Under the pieces are notes generated by a model, which was not told where the DNA came from, did no database searches, and saw only the letters and a list, made by a program, of their open reading frames with translations. Shown one piece after another: positions 34,501 to 63,976 of a stretch of DNA of 64,000 nt (its first letter is position 1; each line of letters opens with the position of its first letter). Source of the DNA: Bugula neritina (Eukaryota > Animalia > Bryozoa); the NCBI GenBank assembly GCA_964035545.1, contig OZ037766.1, forward strand, positions 5,198,722 to 5,262,721, written 5' to 3'. The translations under genes were made by a program, and so were the position numbers.

Positions 34501-37500
34501 ACCTGTTCGGGACAATGTGAGTCTATACTGTGTCACATGTACTGTGTCACATATACTGTGTCACATGTACTGTGTCACATGTACTGTGTCACATATACTG
34601 TGTCACATATACTGTGTCACATATACTGTGTCACATGTACTGTGTCACATATACTGTGTCACATGTACTATGTCACATATACTGTGTCACATGTACTGTG
34701 TCACATGTACTGTGTCCTACCTGGTATTATATCTCGTTTAGTTCATACATGTTGGTACATACATATACATACATGTATGTAATGCTTTATATTGGCATTT
34801 GAGCTTTTATTAAAACTCTCTTTAGTCTTTCTTGTCTTGGATATGCTAAGACATTTCATTTAAACCCATTTATTTTTAGTCTCACTGTTTATAACTTCAA
34901 AAGCGGCATAAACAAATTCACAAATAGAAGTTATAACCTTATGTTTACATACTCTTGGATGTTGTATTGTGTTGTGTTTAGCATACAATTTATTATTTTA
35001 CCTATAGGACTTGGCCTTGAAGACATCAGAGTACGAGGATCTGGCCAAACCTCTGCTGCTGTGGCTCAAGGAAAAGACAAGTCATTGCGTCACTGGAGAA
35101 TTTTCACCTACTTTAGTAGAAGTTAAGGTACTACATTCTCTTTGAACCTCAATTACCATGGCATTTAAAAAAAATCGTCTACTTAAAAAGCAGTTAATTC
35201 ATCAGCTGGCATTATTGGGAATTTTTTGCCTTAAAAGTCTTATAAAGCTGTTGCCAATTGCTTGTCATTGGCAATTCACTCACTAATCAATAGTGGTGCT
35301 CAAAAGTGTACCGTTGAGTTGATAAATTGGAAGTGAAATTGTTAATTTATTGTACAATTTATTTTGGTTGCTAGAGGGCATGAGATCTAGCTGATGCAAA
35401 TTTTGAGTGCGTTTGCAGTTAGTTATAACATCGTAAAGAATGTTATTTCATAGGTAGATACTGCCTATAAATAGATGTGAATGAAAATTGCAAAAAAGTA
35501 AAATGAATTTGCTTTTTAATCATATCTTTTGATTGATAAAATCATGCAATGTCAAATTAATTGAGCTCAAAAAATGCCAGCCACCAGGATTGGCAGTTGC
35601 CGAAACCCGGGATCGAACCAGGGACCTTTAGATCTTCAGTCTAACGCTCTCCCAACTGAGCTATTTCGGCTGGTGCTTTACGAGGCCGTTAAATATGATT
35701 CGATAACTCCAAACGTTTATTTGTCAACTGTGGACTATGGCACGAGCATTGTTTATTTGTCGAAGCATATCTGTTGATATCTGTAATGACATGTGTTTTA
35801 TTGCGCAACAACTTACCCACAGGCTGTATAAAATATAGAGTGGTTTTAGTAGTGATGACTGTATTGAAAGTTATGCTGTTAACTAATGCCTAGTAATATG
35901 ATTTATATTAGAGTGATCTCACTGAGTTTCAAAAATTCCGTTCTGAAGACATTCCTGCAAAACTAGCTAACAAAAGGAGACTAGAAATACTCTTTTATGA
36001 AATTGAGGTAAGGCTTCTAGAAAATAATATTTTAATAGAAGTTAGGCTTAGGGGAAATTAACTTTGTGATTTGCACTTTTATTTAAAATTTAAACGCTTT
36101 TCTCATTTCTGTATAAGCTTGTCATAGAACTATACTTCTGAAATATATTGTTAGTTTCCTTTGTTGTTGGATGCCCTTATTTATTTTTTTTACTGTTTAG
36201 CTAAATATTATGATACTTGGTTAGTTAATTGTTTATTCTAGTTGTTAAAATGTTAAATTTGCTTATTTTTATTTATTCAACAATTATGAAAAATTTACAG
36301 AAATGAGAAAAAATAGCAAAAAACCATATATTAATATAATGTTTAAGCATTTATTGGTTGTTGATGCATTAATCCACCTAAATAATTATCTATGGAAACA
36401 TATCAATTTTCAATGACTAAACTTATGAATATGAGAGCACTGCTATCATATTTATGGCTGTTAATTCATCTCGAAATCTGTTATGATTTTAGCATCTCAA
36501 ATCTTCTCCGGTAAGGATTCAGTGCAACACTTTGTCCTTGTTATTGTGTTATATGCTTTGCATGTTCTTTTGGTTGTCTCCCTCTGTTGCTTCTGTTGTC
36601 ACAACATAGTAGAGAAAAGTGTGTTCCCTCAAGTGTAGGATAGGGCAATTCCAAATATGCCGATCCTTACACCTTTTACCTGTATGGAGTCTTTTCCTCA
36701 GTTGCTATATGATTTGTGCCTATTTCACCACAATGATGCAGTTGAAGTGTATTGAAAAAGATCATATTTTCATTTAATACCTTTATTTGTGATAAATCGT
36801 TGACGTTTTGCTGAAAAATAAATTTGCATGGTATTTATTCTAATAAAACTGTTCCTTTTTATCAAATTTTGAGACCTTATCATGAGCTGGAATATTTTAG
36901 AACATGATAGGACAATTTCCTCTAGATGAGCAAATCCACATAGACAGCTTGACGCAGTTGTGGGACAAGTTTGCATCTGTAGTTGATGATCGAGAGCAGG
37001 CCTTGCTAGCCGAGGTTGCTCGTCTGCAAAGGCTTCAGAAGTTAGCCGAGAAAGTTCACAAAGATACAAAGCGGTGTGAGGGTTACCTCTCAGACGTGGA
37101 GCAGCGACTCAATGAGGTCAGCGTTATACTGCTGCTGCCCGTCAAAATGTTTTAGGATAAACGACCGGTCCCCATATCTAATGTTTTCAGCTGGAGATGG
37201 CAAAATAGCATAAAATTGATAAACTAATGACTAATGAAATTACATCATAGGCTTAATTTGTTTTTTTATGACAGTCTTTTGAGCTCTATGAGCTTAGTAT
37301 AGAGCTCATAGCTGGCTCTGCATATGACTATATGTAGATGATTAGCTTTAAACTGTTTATATTCATATTGTTTATTTGCTACTAAATTGAGTCAGCTCAT
37401 ATAAATTAGTATGCTCTTGGGTTTTTATATCAAAAAGTTGTTTTTTTTAACTTACAATATTTTGTCTTCAGACCAATTTTATTCTACTGATTCTTAATCT

Positions 37501-55500: not shown

Positions 55501-58500
55501 CCACCCAAGAGTCAACTTTCTCCTCAAATAGGAGCCGTGAACTCAAGTTTTGGAGGCCAACATTCGGGAAACCATTCTTCAGGTAAAAGCACTGTCCAGG
55601 CCAAGTTATCCGCTCTGAAGGAGTCAACCAAGGCCACTCTTCTTCCAGCTAGTTCACCTTCTCCGATGGATACAAAGACATCTTCACCAAACTCGACCTC
55701 TTCAACTGCCAGGAAGACCTCTACTCCCGTATCCACGGCATCTCAATCTGACACAAAGAGTTCTGCAGCTCCTACTACACTTACCTCACCCGGCTCTGTT
55801 AAATCTCTGCCGTCATCTACTGGAGATCGTACACCATCAGCCCTCAAAGAGCGTTCACAAAGTTCAGCTGTAAAGAGTGCTGCGGCTTCTATGAGTAGTC
55901 CTGAACCATTGCCGATTAGTCATAAACCAGCAACAGCAAGCCTAAAATTATCTGTCACTAGCCCCAAATCGTCTGCAACCAGCCCCAAATCGTCTGCAAC
56001 CAGCCCCAAGTCATCTTCAACCAGCCCCAAGTCATCTTCAACCAGCCCCAAGTCATCTGCAACCAGCCCCAAGTCATCTGTCAGTAGTCCCAAGTCATCT
56101 ACTATCAGTCCCAAGTCATCTGCAACCAGCCCCAAGTTGCCTGTTACTACTCCTGAGCCATCAACCGAGGTTTCCCTCACTTTAGCCAGGTGGGTTTCTG
56201 CTATTTAAAAATACATGCATAATGACAATTTCAGAATTAATTATTTGTAATTCTGATGAACACCAAACTCATCACCATGTATATTATAATTTAGAATCAT
56301 ATAGAATATAAGACACCTTGTGACATAGTAACTAATAGGTTTCTGCTAGTAAAATTAATTTGTTACACTTTAATTATCACTTTGGCCTGAAGTTATTGTT
56401 GCTAATTTTCTTGATGGAGATTGTCTCCCTTGTGTGATGACATCACAGGTTGGATGCTGCGATTAAGAATACAAAAACATTGAATATATAAGCGTTTGTG
56501 TTGAGGTTTTAAGATTGTTGAAATGCATAAATTAATTATTACTGTTTGATAAGTTGATGGAACTCGCCTACCAAATGTCTATTTTATCCAAATATTATCA
56601 TTTTAGTAAAAATAGCCCTTTTTATGGTTATGAGTGATTTCATCAGTATTGTTAGATCTGGACATCTACTCTCCATAAAATGTTTGTAGCAGCCAGACCT
56701 CCGTGTCAGAACTGGGTACTCTCAAACCACAAGTGAAAAGCAAGTCCCTCCCTCATTTCAAGAAACAACCAATCAAAGAATCAGCTATTTCACCGTAAGT
56801 TTGCTCCTTTTTTTATTTTTTCACATTACTTTGTTAAAGCTGTTGTGCTGCCATAGTTTCCAGTATATCCTTTGCAGTGATGAAAGAGATCTGATAATGG
56901 CCATGGTTACAATATTAACTCCACAATTTAGATATACAAAAATCTTGTATGTCAAAGCTTCTCACAGCTGTTTTTGTTTCTTTTAAAAGTTATGAATTTT
57001 TTTATCAAATATTTATATCAAAATGGTTATAGGTCTGCCAGAGATAGCCATGCCTACTGTTGACTACCTTTATATTAGCCAGTGGAGATGTGTTATGCTG
57101 TTATATAGACACTTTCTTAGTTACTATACTTGGTTACTCTGTTATATTTAGTCAATGAACTCACTCACTGATAGCTGGTGATATAATGTACTGCACAGGT
57201 GTAACACTCTAGTGCAGAGTTGTATGCCCTTAAAACTAATACTAATTAGTTCATTAGTCATTTGGCAACTGCTGCTGCTGACATTTCACCTTTAGACTGA
57301 TTCGTTGTATTCATTAGATTTTAGATATTTCATTATCTGCTACACATCTCCTGGCATTACAGCACAAACCATGCCTACGTTGTAGAGAGAGGCCTTGCAT
57401 CCTTTTCTTTTAGTTGCACGGTTAGTTGTTTAGCTTTTCGATGCTGCCTGAGCAATGCTGCGTTTATTGTTTTGAAGAATTCGGAAAGACGAAGAGCGTA
57501 AGGTGCGACCTATTTTCGTAGATCCCAGCGTAACCGTAACGGAGAGGGTTATAGCCATAGAGAGCAGAAAACGTCCCCAACTATCTTCTCATTCTGACAA
57601 TATCAGTGCGACTGAGTATTTTACTAAAGGTAAGCTCAAGTGTGCTCTGCATGTTTAGTTACTATTCAAGATAATAGAATGCACAAAAACTGGCTCTTCC
57701 ACAACCTCCCACTATTTCAACCTCATCTCTGTTATAACTTCATTAGGTTTACTGTATTAAGGTGTTCAGTGAGAAAAAAGCATTTGTATGATGCACAGCG
57801 ATGAAAGAAACTCTTGCAAAAATGAAAGAGTAATTGACACTCGTAACAGTTAATTTTGCCTCATTGCAATTCATATTGGTTATCAAATATATCAAAATAA
57901 TATATATATTAAATATAATGTATCATTCAATAATCAATATATCAGTTACTTCGAAGCATTAATTACGTCATTTGTTAAAGGATTGTTAAGTGTCAGGGGG
58001 TGTAGCTCAAATGGTAGAGCGCTCGCTTAGCATGCGAGAGGTACCGGGATCGATACCCGGCACCTCCACATTTTTTTCTTTTCGGCTTGAAGCTGCTTGC
58101 ATTAATGGAGAATTATTATCAACAAAGTTACCAACACGTAACTGCAGTGCTGTATGGAGCTGAATTGTTTATATTCTTTCTATTAATTTTAAACTTCTAA
58201 AAAGTTATGAAAACAGTTATTTGGAAAAACCCGGAATACAAATTTTATTAGCTGTTACTTTTATATATTTTAATCATTATTGCAAACTTGTAAATTAAAA
58301 GCTATGTACCATAGTCTCACAAAGTTACTATATTGAAGCTGCTCAATTTCAATTGACTAGTTAATCAATTACTATAGTTTTTTTATAATATATTCATTTT
58401 TGGTAGACACTTTTTATAAGGCTGGTGACATGATGTTTTGCCCACAGGTGACGTTGAAGTTGAAATTGAAACTGAAGATGACAATCCTATAGACAATTAT

Positions 58501-61500
58501 GAAGTAAAATTACCAAATTCAGAGCCACAAGCTTTTGATTGGAACTCTCTGCCTATCGCACCTTTACAAGAGCGAAAAATAGTTGTGGAATCAAAAGAAC
58601 GAAGCAATCCATTGCGTGACAAAGAAATTATAATTATTGAGAGAGAAGAAGTTGGCTTAGAAATTGAAGATGCTTTAAATTTAGGTATGTAGAAGCAAAA
58701 AGAAGCGCCCGAGGTGGGGCTCGAACCCACGACCCTGGGATTAAGAGTCCCATGCTCTACCGACTGAGCCACCCGGGCTGTTGAGTGTTGCGCTTCCTAG
58801 CCTGTAATAAATTAGAACAAAATAGAAAACCATATTTGTTTGCTTTGTTTGGACCGTTTCCATAAAGAAAGCATGGCCGAACAACCATCACAACCCAAAA
58901 GTGGAATCAAAGTGTCAAACCCATTGAGACTGTAATGTTTTAAAACCAGACATTTTCTTGCACACAAAAGTTTTTGTATTTAATCGAAATAGAAATATAA
59001 AAAATACGTAGTTTTCAAACTGCTCAACCAACGGGAACCTGCATATCTCAATTACTTGGAGGGATTTTAATAATGCAGTATTTTATTCAATGTGTACAGG
59101 CCTTCACTGCTGGGTTGATTATGTTCGATCTATTTTCGTGAGCTTTTATGCAAGAGATTCATAAATTTTGTGACGCAATGTATAAACCTTGGATTCGTTT
59201 TTGGCACTCCAGTATTATACTGCTGAGGCCAGCACTGTGTGCCTTGGAATGTGGCATATAGCTGTTGTCATAGTTATTGAATAAACATTATAGTATGCAT
59301 TCAAAATAAAATTAAATTACTCATCTGCGAATGAGCCATTCAACAGATGTACATAAAACATACTACTACTACTGTTGCTACAGCTCATACTACTACTACT
59401 ACTACTACTGATACAATTACTGCTGCTGCTGCTGCATACCTACAATGTAATAACATGGAGCTTTTTCTCTACAACTGTAGGCCACATTAACTACACCACC
59501 AACCAGTTCACCCATCCAGTCAGCAAAGAAATCATGCCAATTCAAAAAGCTGCCACCAAAGGATATCTGAAGGGCAGTCAGCAAGACATTGAAGCTGCCA
59601 TTGATGCCTACAGGAAGCGTGCATCTGTCATGGAATACAAAGTCACTGCGGTAAGTGTTTTAGAGGCTTCTGTGTCTTATACTGCGGCTGTTACACCAAT
59701 CTACCACACCTACAGTGTTTTCTTTACATCTATGTACATTGTTAAATACTCTGAACGCAAATGTATGAATTGAAATCAAGACGTTTTCAGGAATAATGGG
59801 GGTGAGGACATCTGTAAAATATTATGGTCACTTTAAATGTGTAATTTCACATTGTATGGTTGGGGCATAGAGTAATTATGATAATTGTAATCAAGTACTG
59901 GTGATAAAAATACCATAAGCGCCATACGTATTTACTTAGACAAGTATTAATCGGTCACGCTGTATCAGCCGAAATAGCTCAGTTGGGAGAGCGTTAGACT
60001 GAAGATCTAAAGGTCCCTGGTTCGATCCCGGGTTTCGGCAACTGCCAAATCTGGTGGCTGATATTTTTTTTTTTAAACTTGAGTTAGCTACAAGTTTTTC
60101 AATTACAACTTTTATTTTTTTCAGGAAGAATCATACAAAGAAAACCGAGAGAGTCGAGGCGTACCATTTATTGAAGCTGTAGATACAGGCCAGGTTGACT
60201 TACAGTCTGGAACGTTCAAAGATACTCGTTCTTTAGTACAATATAGCCTCAGTGATGCCATTTCTGAAGCCTTACTTGACGGTGAGTCTGCTTGGTTCAC
60301 TACTCCTGGCACCAAAAGGCTGTTTAACATTTCTGAAGCTATTCGATGCAAAGCTATGGATAATCATGGATTCTGGTGCAGTCAACTTTCAGGTATGTTT
60401 TTAAATAAGTTTATATTTACTGCAAAATAATGCAACTACATCCGTTGCATCTAGATACTAAATAAAACTAAATTTGATTGCCTCAGTTTTTCAAACTTCA
60501 GTAATTTTCTTTTAAACATGCAAACTTTGGGAAGTTTTTGATTTAATCTTTTGCACCTAGTCATTAAAAACTTTGCTTACTTGCAGGGCAAAAGTTGTCA
60601 TTCTCTGAAGGAATAAAGAAAGGGTACATCGTCCTGCTTGATCCTGCCAATGAAAATCGATGCCTACTGACTCAAGTCAAGAAGTTCTCAGTGCATCGTG
60701 TCATACATCCTGTATCCATGGAGACAGTTGACTACAGTGTAGCTGTGTTAGAAGGCAAGTGTAATTCAAACCAAGCCCCTGATAAATGTGTCGCATTGCA
60801 TATAAGAATAATCTAGAAAGTCCCGCTTCGATCAATGTGATTTGGGAGTGAAATCTCATCTTAGGAAATTGTCAAACTTTAATGTTCAGTTTTCATAATC
60901 AGCTCAGGTTTTACATCAATTGTGACCCACTAGGTGTGATTTTAAGTTGAAAGTGAAATGATTTTAAATATATTTCTGTTACCCTCGCAGTTGAAAGCAA
61001 AACGTACTCCAGTTTATAATTATTTGTCACAAAATTTGAGAAAACTGCATATCTACTTTTAGAAAAACACCTGTTGAAAAGCTTGATCAGTTTCAACCTG
61101 TTGATTAAATAATTGTTAAACTACCTTACAATTGTAATTTTGCTAACTTTACTTAGTACTATATCAAGATTATGGACTTTTAACTAATTTGAAACAAGTT
61201 CCAGTGTTTACTTGTTTGTTATGTAAAGAATTCTACCATATCTACAAAATATTCAGATGTGTGCACACTGTAACTGTAAATGTGAGATTAGAGGCACATA
61301 ACATAGTATCATTTCTTACATACAGGCGTTATAAACACTGTTGAGGGCGTATACAGGAGCCCCGTAACAGGGGACAGCCTCACTATTGACGAAGCTATAG
61401 AAAAGCGTCTGATAGCTGGAATTCTGTTGTCCATGAAGACCAGAAGGTCAGCGCTGCCTGAGCCACAGAAACTAGCTCTATTTACAGAACGTCTCAGCTA

Positions 61501-63976
61501 CACCATCACCCACGCCAAAAACACGGTTACAGGTAATTTAAGCTTTATATATTATAAAAGTTGTGATCAGGACTTGTGAATATTTGATAGCTAAATGTAG
61601 TTTAGTATTGGTGTTCCACATCTACTCATGGAGATTATAGAACTTTAAAAGTTTATGAGAAAATTTCAAGTTGCCCTTGAAAACCAATTAGTGTTAGTGT
61701 TATGAATGTTATTTAACATAAAATGAAGCTATAGCTTCTAGTCTGCAGTGAGCCTACGTGCATGTGCTACTGAAGATTAAGACAGATAATTATTTATAAA
61801 TGAAATATTGGTTTATTTTATCAAAGCTTTTTTTATAGTGAGTTAATGCAGTGATCAGTGATTTGTATCATCTCTTGCCAGCTGTTTGTTTATCAATTTT
61901 CTCACGATGCAAATTGTTTGCTTTGTGTTTTGGTCACATTCAGTAGCGGTCTCATCTTTACTATCACTGCCCATAATCACTAGCCGAAATAGCTCAGTTG
62001 GGAGAGCGTTAGACTGAAGATCTAAAGGTCCCTGGTTCGATCCCGGGTTTCGGCAACTGCCAAATCTGGTGGCTAGTATTTTTTGTTAAGCCTTTTCAAA
62101 CTGAAACACTCCATCTCTAATTATAACAGCTTTATGTATTACATTTTGGCAACTGTTGGAATAAAAGTCTATTCAGAGTCTGACGTAATATTATCACTCC
62201 CTGCTACATTGCAACATGATATAATTTTCGCATCTGACACCATCAGCCCACTGCTAGCAATTATGATCAAGAGTCAAGTTACGAGTATCTAAAAGTTGAT
62301 AACTATTTATTTGACTGAAAATAGAAGAATTTTTAATTTTCAAGTGCATAAAAAGCCTGCAGACCGATAGAGTAGCTCATTGGCCCTAAGCTGCTCACAC
62401 TAAACACCCCACTATCAGGTTGTGTGTGCTAGTTTACTATGCTGGCTGGTTAAAGTTGTTAAATCACACTTTTAGGTAAAAACATGACAATCGGGGAAGC
62501 CAGAGCCCAGGGAATTCTAGACAAAGATTTGACAACGTTTACTGACCTGAAGAGTGGTAAAATATATTCTATTCAGGAAGCTATTGATTCAAACTTTCTT
62601 GTTGCAACTTTGGACAATTCCAGCTCTCCCACAGCTAAAGGTGAGTTTCTATCGGAAGCTAGCTATAAAAAGTATGAGTTGGTTTTACTAAGTACTAGTA
62701 AAAGTACTTTTATTTTCTATAATGTAATGTATCTTCTCAAAACTGGGTATGAATAGCAGCCTGGTGTATTGAAATATAAACAAATAGAAAAGCTATTCAG
62801 GCCAATTATGAGTTGATTTAACCCATTAATTATTCTAACAATAAAGCATGACCAGATACATTTCTTGTTCTGAGAGCCTCTTGTTCACCGTGTTGTGTCT
62901 CGTAGGAGCTCGGTTTGTATCGACAAAAGTCCACAACATTGACTCGGTGGTGAACCCTCGAACTAAGAATACCATATCTGTATATGAAGCTGTGAAGGAG
63001 GGAATAATAGATGAAGAAACAGGTTAGTAGTCTTAGTACCAAGATGAAGTTTATTTCATGGGTTTAGCTGTGGAAAAACACAATGCTTGATCAGCTAGCT
63101 GTAAATAATAATATGTTGGGTTATACATTTGTTGACACTGTGATACTATGAAATCTAGCCAAGTGAAAAGATATTGCTGCAGTATTAGTATTAAGCACGA
63201 ACACCTTCCTAGAAACGGCATAGATTTTGTGAAATTGCTGCAATCTAACATATTTGCAACTGTTTTATTGGAAATTTCTATTAGCAAGCAACAATTGTTT
63301 CAACATTTGACAGGTTGTTACAAAAAATACTTGCTTACTTTGGATTTATTAAAATCTATTTGATGTCAGTTATCTGAAAGTCTTGTTTAAATATCTTACA
63401 AATATGATTGGAATTTTGAATAGGTGATTATGCCAACTTGGATGAGAATGAGAAGCTGAACATATCAACGGCTATAGAGAAAGGGTTGGTCAAGACCCGT
63501 CCCCTACCCACACCGGTTAATGACACACCGTCTCTCTCTATTACCGCTGTAACGAATCCCAACTCAGGTAAATATAAAACTATCAAGTGTGTACCACTAA
63601 AAAGTGTTCAACAGGAAATTTTATATATTTGTTTTAAAATATCAGTGTGAGTATGATTGAATACAAAACGTGACATAATTTATAAAAGTGTGTTATGGGT
63701 CTTATTGCTAGCTGTTTAAATAATGCAAAATTGAGAATCACAATAAAGGCTTATGAGAGCAGATATAGTCCTAGGGAGTTGTCATCTCAATGTGGTATAT
63801 TGCTATTGCAGGAGAACTGCTAACTGTGACGCAGGCATTACAACAAGGTTTCCTAGATCGTGGTCGAAAGCACTTCTGCAATCCCTTCACAGGAACTGTT
63901 TGTTCATTAAATGAAGCTATCAACAATGGCTGGATTCACCTCAAATCTAACATTGAATCTCAGGGCTTTTCGTATG
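10351..63976 (+). CDS. shot: Spectraplakin (short stop/VAB-10/dystonin/MACF1/plectin family), multi-exon, 3'-incomplete in window
   Basis: About 45 phase-compatible exons giving [31 protein letters not shown] (CH1), [18 protein letters not shown]...RLLDPED...[10 protein letters not shown] (CH2), [24 protein letters not shown] (plakin domain), SH3 (ALCSY...KWRVRN...VVPSICL) and many plakin-repeat units (e.g. [20 protein letters not shown]). Confidence 0.93.
11928..12102. repeat. Pentanucleotide microsatellite (CTATG/CTATA, ending in GCACT)
   Basis: Direct reading. Confidence 0.9.
13789..13825 (+). CDS. Candidate alternative first coding exon B ([13 protein letters not shown])
   Basis: ATCATGG start context, strong TG|GTAAG donor, phase 1 compatible with the CH1 exon at 15379. 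Confidence 0.65.
14365..14446 (-). tRNA. tRNA-Ser(UGA), intronic, antisense
   Basis: 82 nt, GCTGCGA acceptor stem, ATGGA-CT-TGA-AA-TCCAT anticodon arm, long variable arm, G73, T-run terminator. Confidence 0.97.
15379..16884 (+). CDS. CH1 domain exons 15379-15440, 16264-16353, 16714-16884
   Basis: [17 protein letters not shown] / [20 protein letters not shown] / [14 protein letters not shown]...[29 protein letters not shown]; canonical AG/GT borders. Confidence 0.95.
18510..18851. mobile_element. Non-autonomous hAT (Charlie-like) MITE, 342 bp
   Basis: TIRs CAGGGCTGTCCAAC / GTTGGACACCCTTG, perfect 8-bp TSD TCCTAAAA, subterminal TGTGGCCC repeats. Confidence 0.9.
20177..20317 (+). CDS. Candidate alternative first coding exon C for a CH1-less isoform ([15 protein letters not shown]...[15 protein letters not shown])
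   Basis: 47 open codons, GAGATGG context, in-frame stop upstream, CAG|GTGGGT phase-0 donor compatible with 32018. Confidence 0.6.
20617..20760. repeat. ~21-bp minisatellite (AGACACATATTAGACACCTGT)
   Basis: About 6-7 degenerate units. Confidence 0.8.
24130..24278. repeat. Foldback element with ~48-bp arms (family also at 27607-27744 and 32247-32289)
   Basis: tcgttctataagcagctccgagttg.. / ..caactcggagctgcttatagaacga. Confidence 0.85.
27094..27189 (+). CDS. Candidate alternative first coding exon D for a CH1-less isoform ([32 protein letters not shown])
   Basis: 32 open codons, phase-0 donor GAG|GTTTGA (weak), CpG-rich promoter-like stretch upstream at ~26560-26960. Confidence 0.55.
27607..27744. 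repeat. Foldback element, diverged copy
   Basis: gaaagtggctaaaagcagc...gcagtttgag / ctcaaactactgc...gctgcttttagcaactttc. Confidence 0.8.
29861..30777. mobile_element. Nested pair of related MITEs with CACTGCGTTTCCAT TIRs (inner element 29876-30625)
   Basis: Four TIR copies (starting 29861 and 29876, ending 30625 and 30777); outer TSD AGT/AGT, inner flanks ATT/AAT. Superfamily (CACTA-like or PIF/Harbinger-like) uncertain. Confidence 0.85.
32018..34516 (+). CDS. CH2 domain exons 32018-32178, 33579-33694, 34413-34516
   Basis: SLLQWSQ...[14 protein letters not shown]...[23 protein letters not shown]...[14 protein letters not shown]; phases 2/1/0 consistent. Confidence 0.95.
32247..32289. repeat. 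Foldback element, internally deleted copy (perfect 18-bp stem)
   Basis: ataagcagctcagagttg-aggcccc-caactctgagctgcttat. Confidence 0.8.
33440..33560. repeat. ~14-bp minisatellite (TAAAGCAACTTAAA)
   Basis: Degenerate tandem units ending ~20 nt before the 33579 acceptor. Confidence 0.8.
33724..34115. repeat. 19-bp minisatellite (GTAAACCTGTGACCTGATA) x ~20
   Basis: Head-to-tail units without spacers. Confidence 0.95.
34525..34716. repeat. 14-bp minisatellite (ACTGTGTCACATRT) x ~14
   Basis: Head-to-tail units; they explain the three overlapping repetitive ORFs. Confidence 0.95.
35008..46630 (+). CDS. Plakin domain (spectrin repeats + SH3) exons
   Basis: Exons 35008-35127, 35912-36007, 36493-36510, 36901-37116, 37589-37752, 38119-38274, 38433-38706, 38995-39204, 39539-39700, 40837-40924, 41063-41175, 41433-41588, 41707-41820, 41986-42255, 42752-42928, 43545-43703, 44131-44298, 44511-44633, 45389-45579, 46049-46157, 46281-46361, 46526-46630 (last one tentative); the frame stays open across junctions. 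Confidence 0.88.
35598..35670 (-). tRNA. tRNA-Phe(GAA), intronic, antisense
   Basis: GCCGAAATAGCTCAGTTGGGAGAGCGTTAGACTGAAGATCTAAAGGTCCCTGGTTCGATCCCGGGTTTCGGCA; T6 terminator at 35574-35569. Confidence 0.98.
41254..41326 (+). tRNA. tRNA-Val(AAC), intronic, sense
   Basis: Full cloverleaf, TCTGC-TT-AAC-AC-GCAGA, T-run 2 nt downstream. Confidence 0.95.
42418..42489 (-). tRNA. tRNA-Glu(CUC), intronic, antisense
   Basis: TCCCAGGTGGTCTAGTGGTTAGGATCCGGCG-CT-CTC-AC-CGCCG...GTTCGATTCCCCGTCTGGGAA, then a T-run. Confidence 0.96.
43359..43431 (+). tRNA. tRNA-Val(UAC), intronic, sense
   Basis: Full cloverleaf, TCTGC-TT-TAC-AC-GCAGA, T8 terminator. Confidence 0.95.
44762..44843 (-). tRNA. tRNA-Ser(AGA), intronic, antisense
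   Basis: 82 nt, ATTGA-CT-AGA-AA-TCAAT, long variable arm, G73, T-run. Confidence 0.97.
45762..45879. mobile_element. Degenerate short copy of the CACTGCGTTTCCAT MITE family
   Basis: gcataatgcgcagtcatggaaacgcagtg matches 30749-30777; the left part resembles the other end (gaatggatt..cat..atggaaa.agttgcatc). Confidence 0.7.
47673..63976 (+). CDS. Plakin-repeat-domain and low-complexity linker exons
   Basis: Exons 47673-48270, 48488-48646, 48838-50733, 50838-50899, 51574-51781, 52144-52248, 52743-52929, 53327-53493, 53859-54045, 54573-54781, 55252-56189, 56690-56794, 57478-57629, 58448-58684, 59481-59650, 60125-60392, 60587-60754, 61326-61532, 62476-62640, 62906-63022, 63424-63567, 63812-63976; recurring [D/N]PxTG...S/TxxEAxxxGxI motifs. 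The junction from 46630 into 47673 (phase 2) is unresolved. Confidence 0.82.
49468..49602 (+). repeat. Coding 21-bp repeat, LPPPS[A/T]E x 5-6
   Basis: Within the 1.9-kb exon. Confidence 0.9.
53718..53838. repeat. 17-bp minisatellite (TAACTTAGTGTATCTTC)
   Basis: About 6-7 units before the 53859 acceptor. Confidence 0.85.
55957..56136 (+). repeat. Coding 21-bp repeat, SPKSS[A/S/V/T]x x 8-9
   Basis: Within exon 55252-56189. Confidence 0.92.
57996..58068 (+). tRNA. tRNA-Ala(AGC), intronic, sense
   Basis: G3:U70 pair, CTCGC-TT-AGC-AT-GCGAG, T7 terminator. Confidence 0.97.
58706..58778 (-). tRNA. tRNA-Lys(CUU), intronic, antisense
   Basis: GCCCGGGTGGCTCAGTCGGTAGAGCATGGGA-CT-CTT-AA-TCCCA...GTTCGAGCCCCACCTCGGGCG, T5 terminator. 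Confidence 0.96.
59968..60040 (+). tRNA. tRNA-Phe(GAA), intronic, sense
   Basis: 73-nt body identical to the 35598 copy; T-run from 60064. Confidence 0.98.
61983..62055 (+). tRNA. tRNA-Phe(GAA), intronic, sense
   Basis: Identical 73-nt body; T-run from 62079. Confidence 0.98.

Follow-up and report, generated by a model that had tools for sequence, protein, structure and literature searches.

The stretch analysed here (the window, 64,000 nucleotides (nt) of the Bugula neritina genome, C2:5198722-5262721 of a 216-Mb animal assembly) contains ten tRNA genes, three of which ARAGORN and Rfam agree in assigning to tRNA-Phe(GAA). These three genes, called A, B and C below, are canonical nuclear tRNA genes with anticodon GAA (RF00005, 69.8 bits against a threshold of 29), and each is followed by a trailer that holds a small hairpin and ends in a tail complementary to the gene's own 5' leader. 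This trailer is our subject. In the rows below, leader bases are counted backwards from -1, next to the mature tRNA, and tail bases forwards from +1; Pol III stands for RNA polymerase III.

59963, plus strand: T at -5 of Phe A, forming with A at -4 a pyrimidine-purine step; likely Pol III start, judged from Y(-5)R(-4) in all 12 sequences of the alignment described below
59964..59967, plus strand: Phe A leader ATCA (-4 to -1), pairs with tail TGAT
59968..60040, plus strand: tRNA-Phe(GAA) gene A, 73 nt, discriminator A73 at 60040 (ARAGORN; RF00005, 69.8 bits)
60041-60063, plus strand: Phe A trailer, 23 nt after base 73
60042..60057, plus strand: Phe A trailer hairpin, with 5' arm CTGCCA (60042-60047), loop AATC (60048-60051) and 3' arm TGGTGG (60052-60057); -5.7 kcal/mol
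60041 and 60058, plus strand: Phe A unpaired junction bases, A74 and C
60059..60063, plus strand: Phe A tail TGATA, of which TGAT pairs with leader ATCA; compensatory A at tail +3
60064..60074, plus strand: Phe A Pol III terminator, T11
61979..61982, plus strand: Phe B leader ACTA (-4 to -1), compensatory T at -2
61983..62055, plus strand: tRNA-Phe(GAA) gene B (ARAGORN, Rfam)
62056..62084, plus strand: Phe B trailer and terminator, comprising A, the hairpin (62057-62072), C, the tail and T6 (62079-62084); the 23-nt trailer is 62056-62078
62074-62078, plus strand: Phe B tail TAGTA, compensatory A at +2
35671..35674, minus strand: Phe C leader ACCA (-4 to -1), the form common to foreign copies
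35598..35670, minus strand: tRNA-Phe(GAA) gene C (ARAGORN, Rfam)
35569..35597, minus strand: Phe C trailer and terminator, comprising A, the hairpin (arms CTGCCA and TGGTGG, loop ATCC, 35596-35581), C, the tail and T6 (35574-35569); the 23-nt trailer is 35597-35575
35579-35575, minus strand: Phe C tail TGGCA, in which C at +4 breaks one pair

A sequence-only reading of the window had singled out this trailer as a conserved and selected module, and its description of the three genes proved accurate: firstly, exactly 23 nt separate base 73 from the T-run in each gene, with the letters as first quoted, and are followed by T11, T6 and T6; secondly, the three copies share the arms CTGCCA/TGGTGG, which include two G-U pairs, and vary only in the loop (AATC or ATCC) and the tail; thirdly, the leader/tail complements TATCA/TGATA, ACTA/TAGT and CCA/TGG are present at Phe A, B and C. 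The seven other tRNA genes of the window have short, unrelated trailers. The flanks of the Phe genes are unrelated on both sides: a 470-nt alignment of the three loci shows similarity only from about -5 to the T-run.

Copies of the trailer within and beyond the genome

A genome-wide search for the gene's final 29 bases, with at most three mismatches, identified five tRNA-Phe genes; copies beyond three mismatches in these 29 bases would escape it. All five carry the structured trailer, 23-24 nt before the Pol III T-run. The two copies outside the window, which also qualify as canonical tRNA-Phe by RF00005, lie at C1:3092273 (leader CATCA, trailer ACTGCCAATCCTGGTGGCTGATA) and C4:5517940 (leader TACCG, trailer ACACCGATCCTGGTGGCTGGTACA). 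For comparison, 36 additional tRNA loci were taken from the Rfam match list, beyond the tRNA genes of the window; across 40 non-Phe genes of at least 14 families, trailers measured 0-10 nt, with a median of 3 and no family-wide conservation. The Phe genes do have a Pol III terminator of at least four T (T-runs of 4-11), but only 23-28 nt past base 73. The trailer extension is specific to tRNA-Phe. No other copy of its motif was found in the 216-Mb assembly besides chance-level near-matches, and in Rfam 15 it matched no RNA family except tRNA, the other matches being noise with E-values of 3-7. Confinement to five genes in 216 Mb rules out a tRNA-derived short interspersed nuclear element or other dispersed repeat.

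The element is also found in other organisms. We scanned metagenomes for the pattern of a Phe gene end, a gap of 8-14 nt and TGGTGGC; most matches were chance bacterial ones, and those listed included at least seven intact foreign tRNA-Phe genes with the element (L073, L080, L089, L094, L096, L156 and L177) and at least three degenerate copies (L108 and two on L085). All the foreign copies listed conform to one consensus: leader (C/T)ACCA, the tRNA, A, 0-3 variable bases, (C)CACCG, AWCC, TGGTGG, C, TGGT, 1-4 bases and at least four T. A 13-mer within it, CCTGGTGGCTGGT (as RNA, CCUGGUGGCUGGU), is invariant or nearly so across all species, and the 5' arm of the hairpin is variable. One of the intact copies, L089, is probably a pseudogene, as its acceptor stem contains two mismatches and a T in its tail is replaced by A. 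Other tRNA genes on the foreign contigs (Ala, Ser, Leu and Lys) have trailers of 2-5 nt. A scan of viral and genome contig collections for further copies yielded only chance matches, on bacterial or viral contigs and with no tRNA context.

These foreign contigs come from different species, since the flanks of L156, L073 and L085 could not be aligned with this genome except in the tRNAs and a few coding or repeat pieces of 69-76% identity. The organism behind L073 is probably another bryozoan, because its HYDIN exon has 80% protein identity to the copy in this genome and the next best match, among 5.8 billion database proteins, has 72%. We also sought an outgroup tRNA-Phe near the neighbours of this HYDIN exon; the contigs fetched held no tRNAs. 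Conservation in species with unalignable flanks bears out the claim that the trailer is under selection and is no duplication leftover, and, together with the unrelated flanks within the genome, it rules out recent duplication.

The degenerate copies are informative about the trailer itself. The Phe copy at L108:87-201 (minus strand) has eight substitutions and an 8-nt deletion within positions 1-53, and zero changes from the T-loop through the end of the trailer; its CACCA leader is retained. This pattern reflects either gene-conversion mosaicism or a constraint that acts on the 3' part separately. On L085 the second copy resembles it, with an intact trailer and a decayed tRNA body, and the two together hint that the 3' part has a role of its own. 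Also on L085, positions 1-1000 hold a tandem unit of ~480 nt, each repeat starting with the 3' part (about a third) of tRNA-Phe followed by an intact trailer and T-run; this may be a tRNA-Phe-derived repeat in another species.

A closer comparison comes from two JGI contigs, L316 and L317, which are ~91% identical to 55-64 kb of the window and carry a syntenic Ala-Lys-Phe-Phe cluster. ARAGORN finds the orthologue of the window's tRNA-Ala gene (window positions 58002-58054) on both; L318, from another species, has a tRNA-Ala(AGC). In the sibling species the orthologous Phe A and B genes have unchanged leaders (-7 to -1) and trailers, and the 300-nt flanks differ at 7.3% of sites.

Several observations concern the other tRNA genes. 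Those of the window, between 14365 and 62055, comprise two Ser, three Phe, two Val, and one each of Glu, Ala and Lys; they are interspersed with short open reading frames resembling a calponin-homology domain and plectin repeats, and probably sit in introns of a large plakin-type gene. In four of the five tRNA-Lys TTT genes (L036-L040; trailers of 3-10 nt) AGC stands near the trailer start, a possible weak family signature. Contig C3 holds four tandem tRNA-Ala(TGC) genes (20956586-20959251, L057-L060) at a spacing of ~800-900 nt; the upstream flanks of three are alike, and the first three have a second T-run ~20 nt past the first. Nine matches to the tRNA model crowd into 4 kb of a small contig (C214:41188-45349), an arrangement unlike animal loci that may be organellar or a contaminant. 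The Rfam tRNA search of the genome gave 18,702 tRNA-like first-pass candidates, 63 of them scored, which suggests many tRNA-related repeats.

Folding of the precursor ends

We aligned the 12 intact sequences, five from this genome and seven foreign, and counted base pairs for the cloverleaf, the trailer hairpin and the leader/tail helix. In the helix they were distributed as follows.

Pair -5/+5: standard pair in only 2 of 12
Pair -4/+4: A-U in 11 of 12
Pair -3/+3: C-G in 10, U-A in 2 (Phe A of the window and the C1 copy)
Pair -2/+2: C-G in 11, U-A in 1 (Phe B of the window)
Pair -1/+1: A-U in 10, G-U in 1 (the C4 copy), unpaired in 1 (L089, the probable pseudogene)

The leader/tail helix therefore has four base pairs (bp) and not five, each of them standard in 10-12 of the 12 sequences. 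Its covariation was matched in only 3 of 500 column shuffles, and sliding the register of the helix lowered the share of paired cells to 31-45%. Pairing was preserved by double compensatory changes (U-A for C-G) on at least two independent occasions and by a G-U once, all within this genome. These counts uphold the proposal that the tail pairs with the leader, and the compensatory changes at -2 and -3 are real; the complementarity first described is conserved for -4 to -1 but does not extend to -5. A pyrimidine at -5 and A at -4 are kept in all 12 sequences, and if this Y(-5)A(-4) step marks the Pol III start, as seems likely, the whole 4-nt leader would be paired. There is no unpaired bulge including -1 of the kind found at pre-tRNA ends in general: in all but one of the 12 sequences -1 is paired with +1, and unpaired or extra material at the mature ends is confined to the 3' side (A73, A74, the hairpin and C).

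The trailer hairpin is kept in all 12 sequences, with 6 bp, or 8 bp and a bulged A in the AGCACACCG type, and energies of -5.5 to -9.1 kcal/mol. Its stem had been called invariant. The arms are indeed identical in the three window copies, but theirs is a derived form: the foreign 5' arm is CCACCG, and the four CTGCCA copies of this genome are three transitions away from it. We discounted these changes as stem compensation and treat them as weak evidence, because the opposite arm consists of G and U only, so that any transition keeps the pairing. The G-U pairs, both in the hairpin and at -1, fit an RNA of the tRNA strand and not a DNA palindrome.

When the cloverleaf was enforced, the best fold of most sequences was a three-way junction formed by the hairpin and the leader/tail helix, which agrees with the sequence-only reading that such a junction is the best cloverleaf-compatible fold. 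With shuffled trailers its stability was reached in 2-7 of 200 cases for the better-preserved foreign copies and, less clearly, in 14-44 of 200 for the copies of this genome.

Proposed mechanism and competing explanations

We hold with moderate confidence that Pol III transcribes everything from about -4 to the T-run as a single conserved unit, a pre-tRNA-Phe into which a structured 3' extension is built. The extension is a 6-8-bp hairpin placed right after A73-A74, followed by C-UGGU that pairs with the leader ACCA, or by covaried versions of the two. Transcription would begin at the conserved purine at -4; the whole leader would then be locked to the 3' tail and the acceptor stem lengthened by 4 bp. 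The junction would have the hairpin for its third arm, and the U-run, together with the 1-4 bases ahead of it, would form a single-stranded 3' overhang. In such a closed precursor both ends would be protected, and the tRNA-Phe family could have its own pace or order of RNase P and RNase Z cleavage, or its own degree of reliance on La. The RNase Z cut after A73 would free a 27-32-nt hairpin RNA with an oligo-U end, that is, a tRNA-derived fragment of type 1 (tRF-1), which may be a mere by-product.

The most likely role for the trailer would be to hold the precursor closed and so to gate RNase P and RNase Z, because pairing that includes -1 reportedly slows RNase P, and RNase Z disfavours leader-bearing substrates. 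Extensive leader/trailer pairing is reported to inhibit RNase P, for which a bulge including -1 is optimal (PMC9705548), and ELAC2/RNase Z disfavours 5'-unprocessed precursors (PMC11996679). Exportin-5 binds end-unprocessed pre-tRNAs in Drosophila (PMC11402290), and, as that paper cites the earlier work, a Pol III transcript whose 5' and 3' ends are paired has a terminal minihelix, which is an Exportin-5 export motif (Gwizdek 2001, 2003, cited in PMC11402290).

Several points weigh against this account of a closed precursor. The covariation rests on two or three events in one genome, and the hairpin by itself is thermodynamically unremarkable (z of about -1.4). The sibling comparison points in the right direction but is weak, as zero changes in 56 nt corresponds to P ~0.02. 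In addition, L317 (2800-2860, against window 59924-59967) lacks 43 nt directly upstream of Phe A, so that the leader there reads ...CATAAGA and cannot pair with the tail TGATA; either the assembly is wrong here, or this natural allele has no leader helix. The start at -4, the termination at the T-run and every effect on processing are things we infer from the sequence; among sequencing runs on record, none labelled as RNA was found to cover the locus. Finally, in other animals this tRNA-Phe body is, so far as is known, functional with no trailer of this kind.

A broader proposal is that the trailer is an old, lineage-wide bryozoan regulatory module, acting either as a cis lock or switch that conditions tRNA-Phe maturation (on La, a helicase, temperature or export) or, through RNase Z, as the source of a conserved trans-acting small RNA. 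We advance this only tentatively. The trailer is probably used, during tRNA maturation or later as a small RNA, because tRNA tails normally evolve freely whereas this one is conserved.

Selection could instead act on the released RNA. The predicted product extends from base 74, next to the discriminator, as far as the Pol III U-run, as the tRF-1 definition has it (on gene anatomy only), and would be a 27-32-nt species of the form 5'-P-A..CCACCG-AWCC-UGGUGG-C-UGGU..UUUU-3', stabilised by its hairpin and by La and acting in trans, with leader pairing secondary. The near-invariance of CCTGGTGGCTGGT beside a variable 5' arm does suggest a sequence constraint beyond the need of a plain hairpin, and L108 and the second L085 copy keep the trailer next to a decayed tRNA body. 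We nonetheless consider this explanation unlikely: a strand of G and U only is expected to be the conserved arm of a hairpin, since its transitions break pairs and those of the C/A arm do not; the compensatory tail/leader changes make sense only with the leader attached, i.e. in cis; and the genome holds no other copies of the motif or its complement to mark targets. A microRNA precursor (pre-miRNA), or a tRNA-miRNA dicistron, is ruled out, as the stem has 6-8 bp and ~20 bp or more are needed for a ~22-nt duplex; the miRNA-sized RNA of the sequence-only reading is, like a stable tRF-1, hypothetical.

It is quite unlikely, in our estimate, that the trailer is a switch that invades the acceptor and T arms, so that maturation is gated by competition between the cloverleaf and a non-tRNA fold. 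This non-tRNA fold pairs CCUGG with positions 61-65, CCG(A) (GCC in the copies of this genome) with 68-72, and UGGCUGGU with -4..+4. It is the unconstrained minimum-energy fold in 11 of 12 precursors and leaves every base of the 13-mer CCUGGUGGCUGGU paired, and RNAalifold chooses its 7-bp helix ACCAGCC/GGCUGGU. The complementarity of the trailer to positions 61-73 lies in the top 1-13% of shuffles in the 11 intact copies, which is only modestly non-random. Yet with shuffled trailers the unmodified tRNA body still prefers non-cloverleaf folds by 2-3 kcal/mol, and the energy excess of the invading fold is notable only in Phe A and Phe B of the window (15/200 and 1/200) and absent in foreign copies (44-71/200). 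The tRNA side of the fold is invariant, which makes a covariation test impossible, and both co-transcriptional folding and tertiary contacts favour the cloverleaf. The sequence-only reading had allowed for two conformers; a fold in which the trailer GGC displaces acceptor bases 70-72 ('GGC-AACT-GCC') does exist, but the case for a switch is weak, since it beats shuffles only in those two genes.

A neutral origin fares worse. We judge it very unlikely that the trailer is a relic left by a gene that supplied the terminator, either the 3' end of one resembling tRNA-Thr(AGT) or part of a tRNA dimer, and that duplication together with gene conversion carried it along. Towards its 3' end the trailer, (CGATCC)...TGGTGGCT, resembles the genome's tRNA-Thr(AGT) in T-loop, 3' acceptor strand and discriminator, the best match among 41 non-Phe tRNA genes; this similarity is only marginally significant, as 6-21 of 300 shuffles equal it for the forms nearest the foreign consensus. 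The window copies combine loop and tail types in a mosaic, consistent with some gene conversion. A relic may account for the source of the trailer but not for its persistence: gene conversion homogenises within a genome and cannot fix a sequence between species with unalignable flanks, and the compensatory leader/tail changes favour selection.

Least of all do we credit a DNA-level protein-binding site downstream of the B box (for a transcription factor, insulator or termination helper), despite the strict conservation of CCTGGTGGCTGGT, the resemblance of CGATCC to half a B box and that of the complement CCACCAGG to what we take to be half of the CTCF core, since each G-U wobble would correspond to an A-C mismatch in the opposite strand, the compensatory changes join bases ~100 nt apart across the gene and so betray RNA folding, the foreign group with T-loop TTCAATCC has the trailer CGAACC and so does not track its B box, and T-runs of 4-11 suffice as terminators alone. 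An extra downstream B box was considered separately. The ex-B of Dictyostelium is a full second B-box consensus downstream of tRNA genes; here there is only CGATCC or CGAACC, and the gene's own T-loop variant is not followed.

Significance and comparison with known systems

To judge from the sequences compared, the Phe trailer is a selected, Phe-specific structured pre-tRNA end, with a putative role in the precursor. We found no description of a conserved tRNA-Phe trailer element in the searchable full-text literature. tRNA flanks are usually seen as fast-evolving, functionless spacers and trailer small RNAs as by-products. The Phe trailer belongs to one isotype, is conserved between species and covaries with its leader. 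It offers a natural, sequence-defined system for the control of RNase P, RNase Z and La by end structure, for a processing order programmed in cis, and for a trailer RNA as a selected product. For annotation it is a caution: the functional unit of these genes would span ~105-110 nt and not 73. If the lineage-wide module is real, a pre-tRNA trailer would itself count among conserved functional RNAs.

The nearest relatives of this arrangement are eukaryotic pre-tRNA ends in general (yeast and human; PMC9705548), where leader-trailer pairing likewise extends the acceptor stem and La, RNase P and RNase Z act. The Phe helix differs in being G-C-rich and conserved in sequence, in belonging to one isotype only and in including -1; on the 3' side of its acceptor stem stands a conserved hairpin of ~16-20 nt, as against a small bulge; and its trailer measures 23-28 nt, whereas PMC9705548 tabulates species with mean lengths of 3-8.5 nt. 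As in the terminal minihelix bound by Exportin-5, the paired ends are modelled to continue into a coaxial stem (4 + 7 + 5 bp) with a 3' overhang of ~5-8 nt, but in the Phe precursor this stem is interrupted by the hairpin arm.

The predicted product of the trailer resembles tRF-1, or type II tRNA-derived small RNAs (e.g. tRF-1001), in that it would start at base 74, end in oligo-U and have the size of a small RNA. As far as we know, the trailers of known tRF-1s are not conserved between paralogues or species and have no defined hairpin. The Phe trailer is by contrast both conserved and structured.

Dicistronic Pol III units provide the last comparison. These include tRNA-tRNA pairs in yeasts, tRNA-small nucleolar RNA (snoRNA) units in plants, the tRNA-miRNA units of murine gammaherpesvirus 68 (MHV68), and MALAT1-mascRNA. 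Like them, the Phe transcript sets a second structured module beside a tRNA-like body, from which tRNA-processing enzymes would separate it. Unlike theirs, the Phe module is small, with ~16-20 nt and a 6-8-bp stem that are too little for a pre-miRNA or snoRNA; it matches no Rfam family, and base-pairs in turn with the leader.

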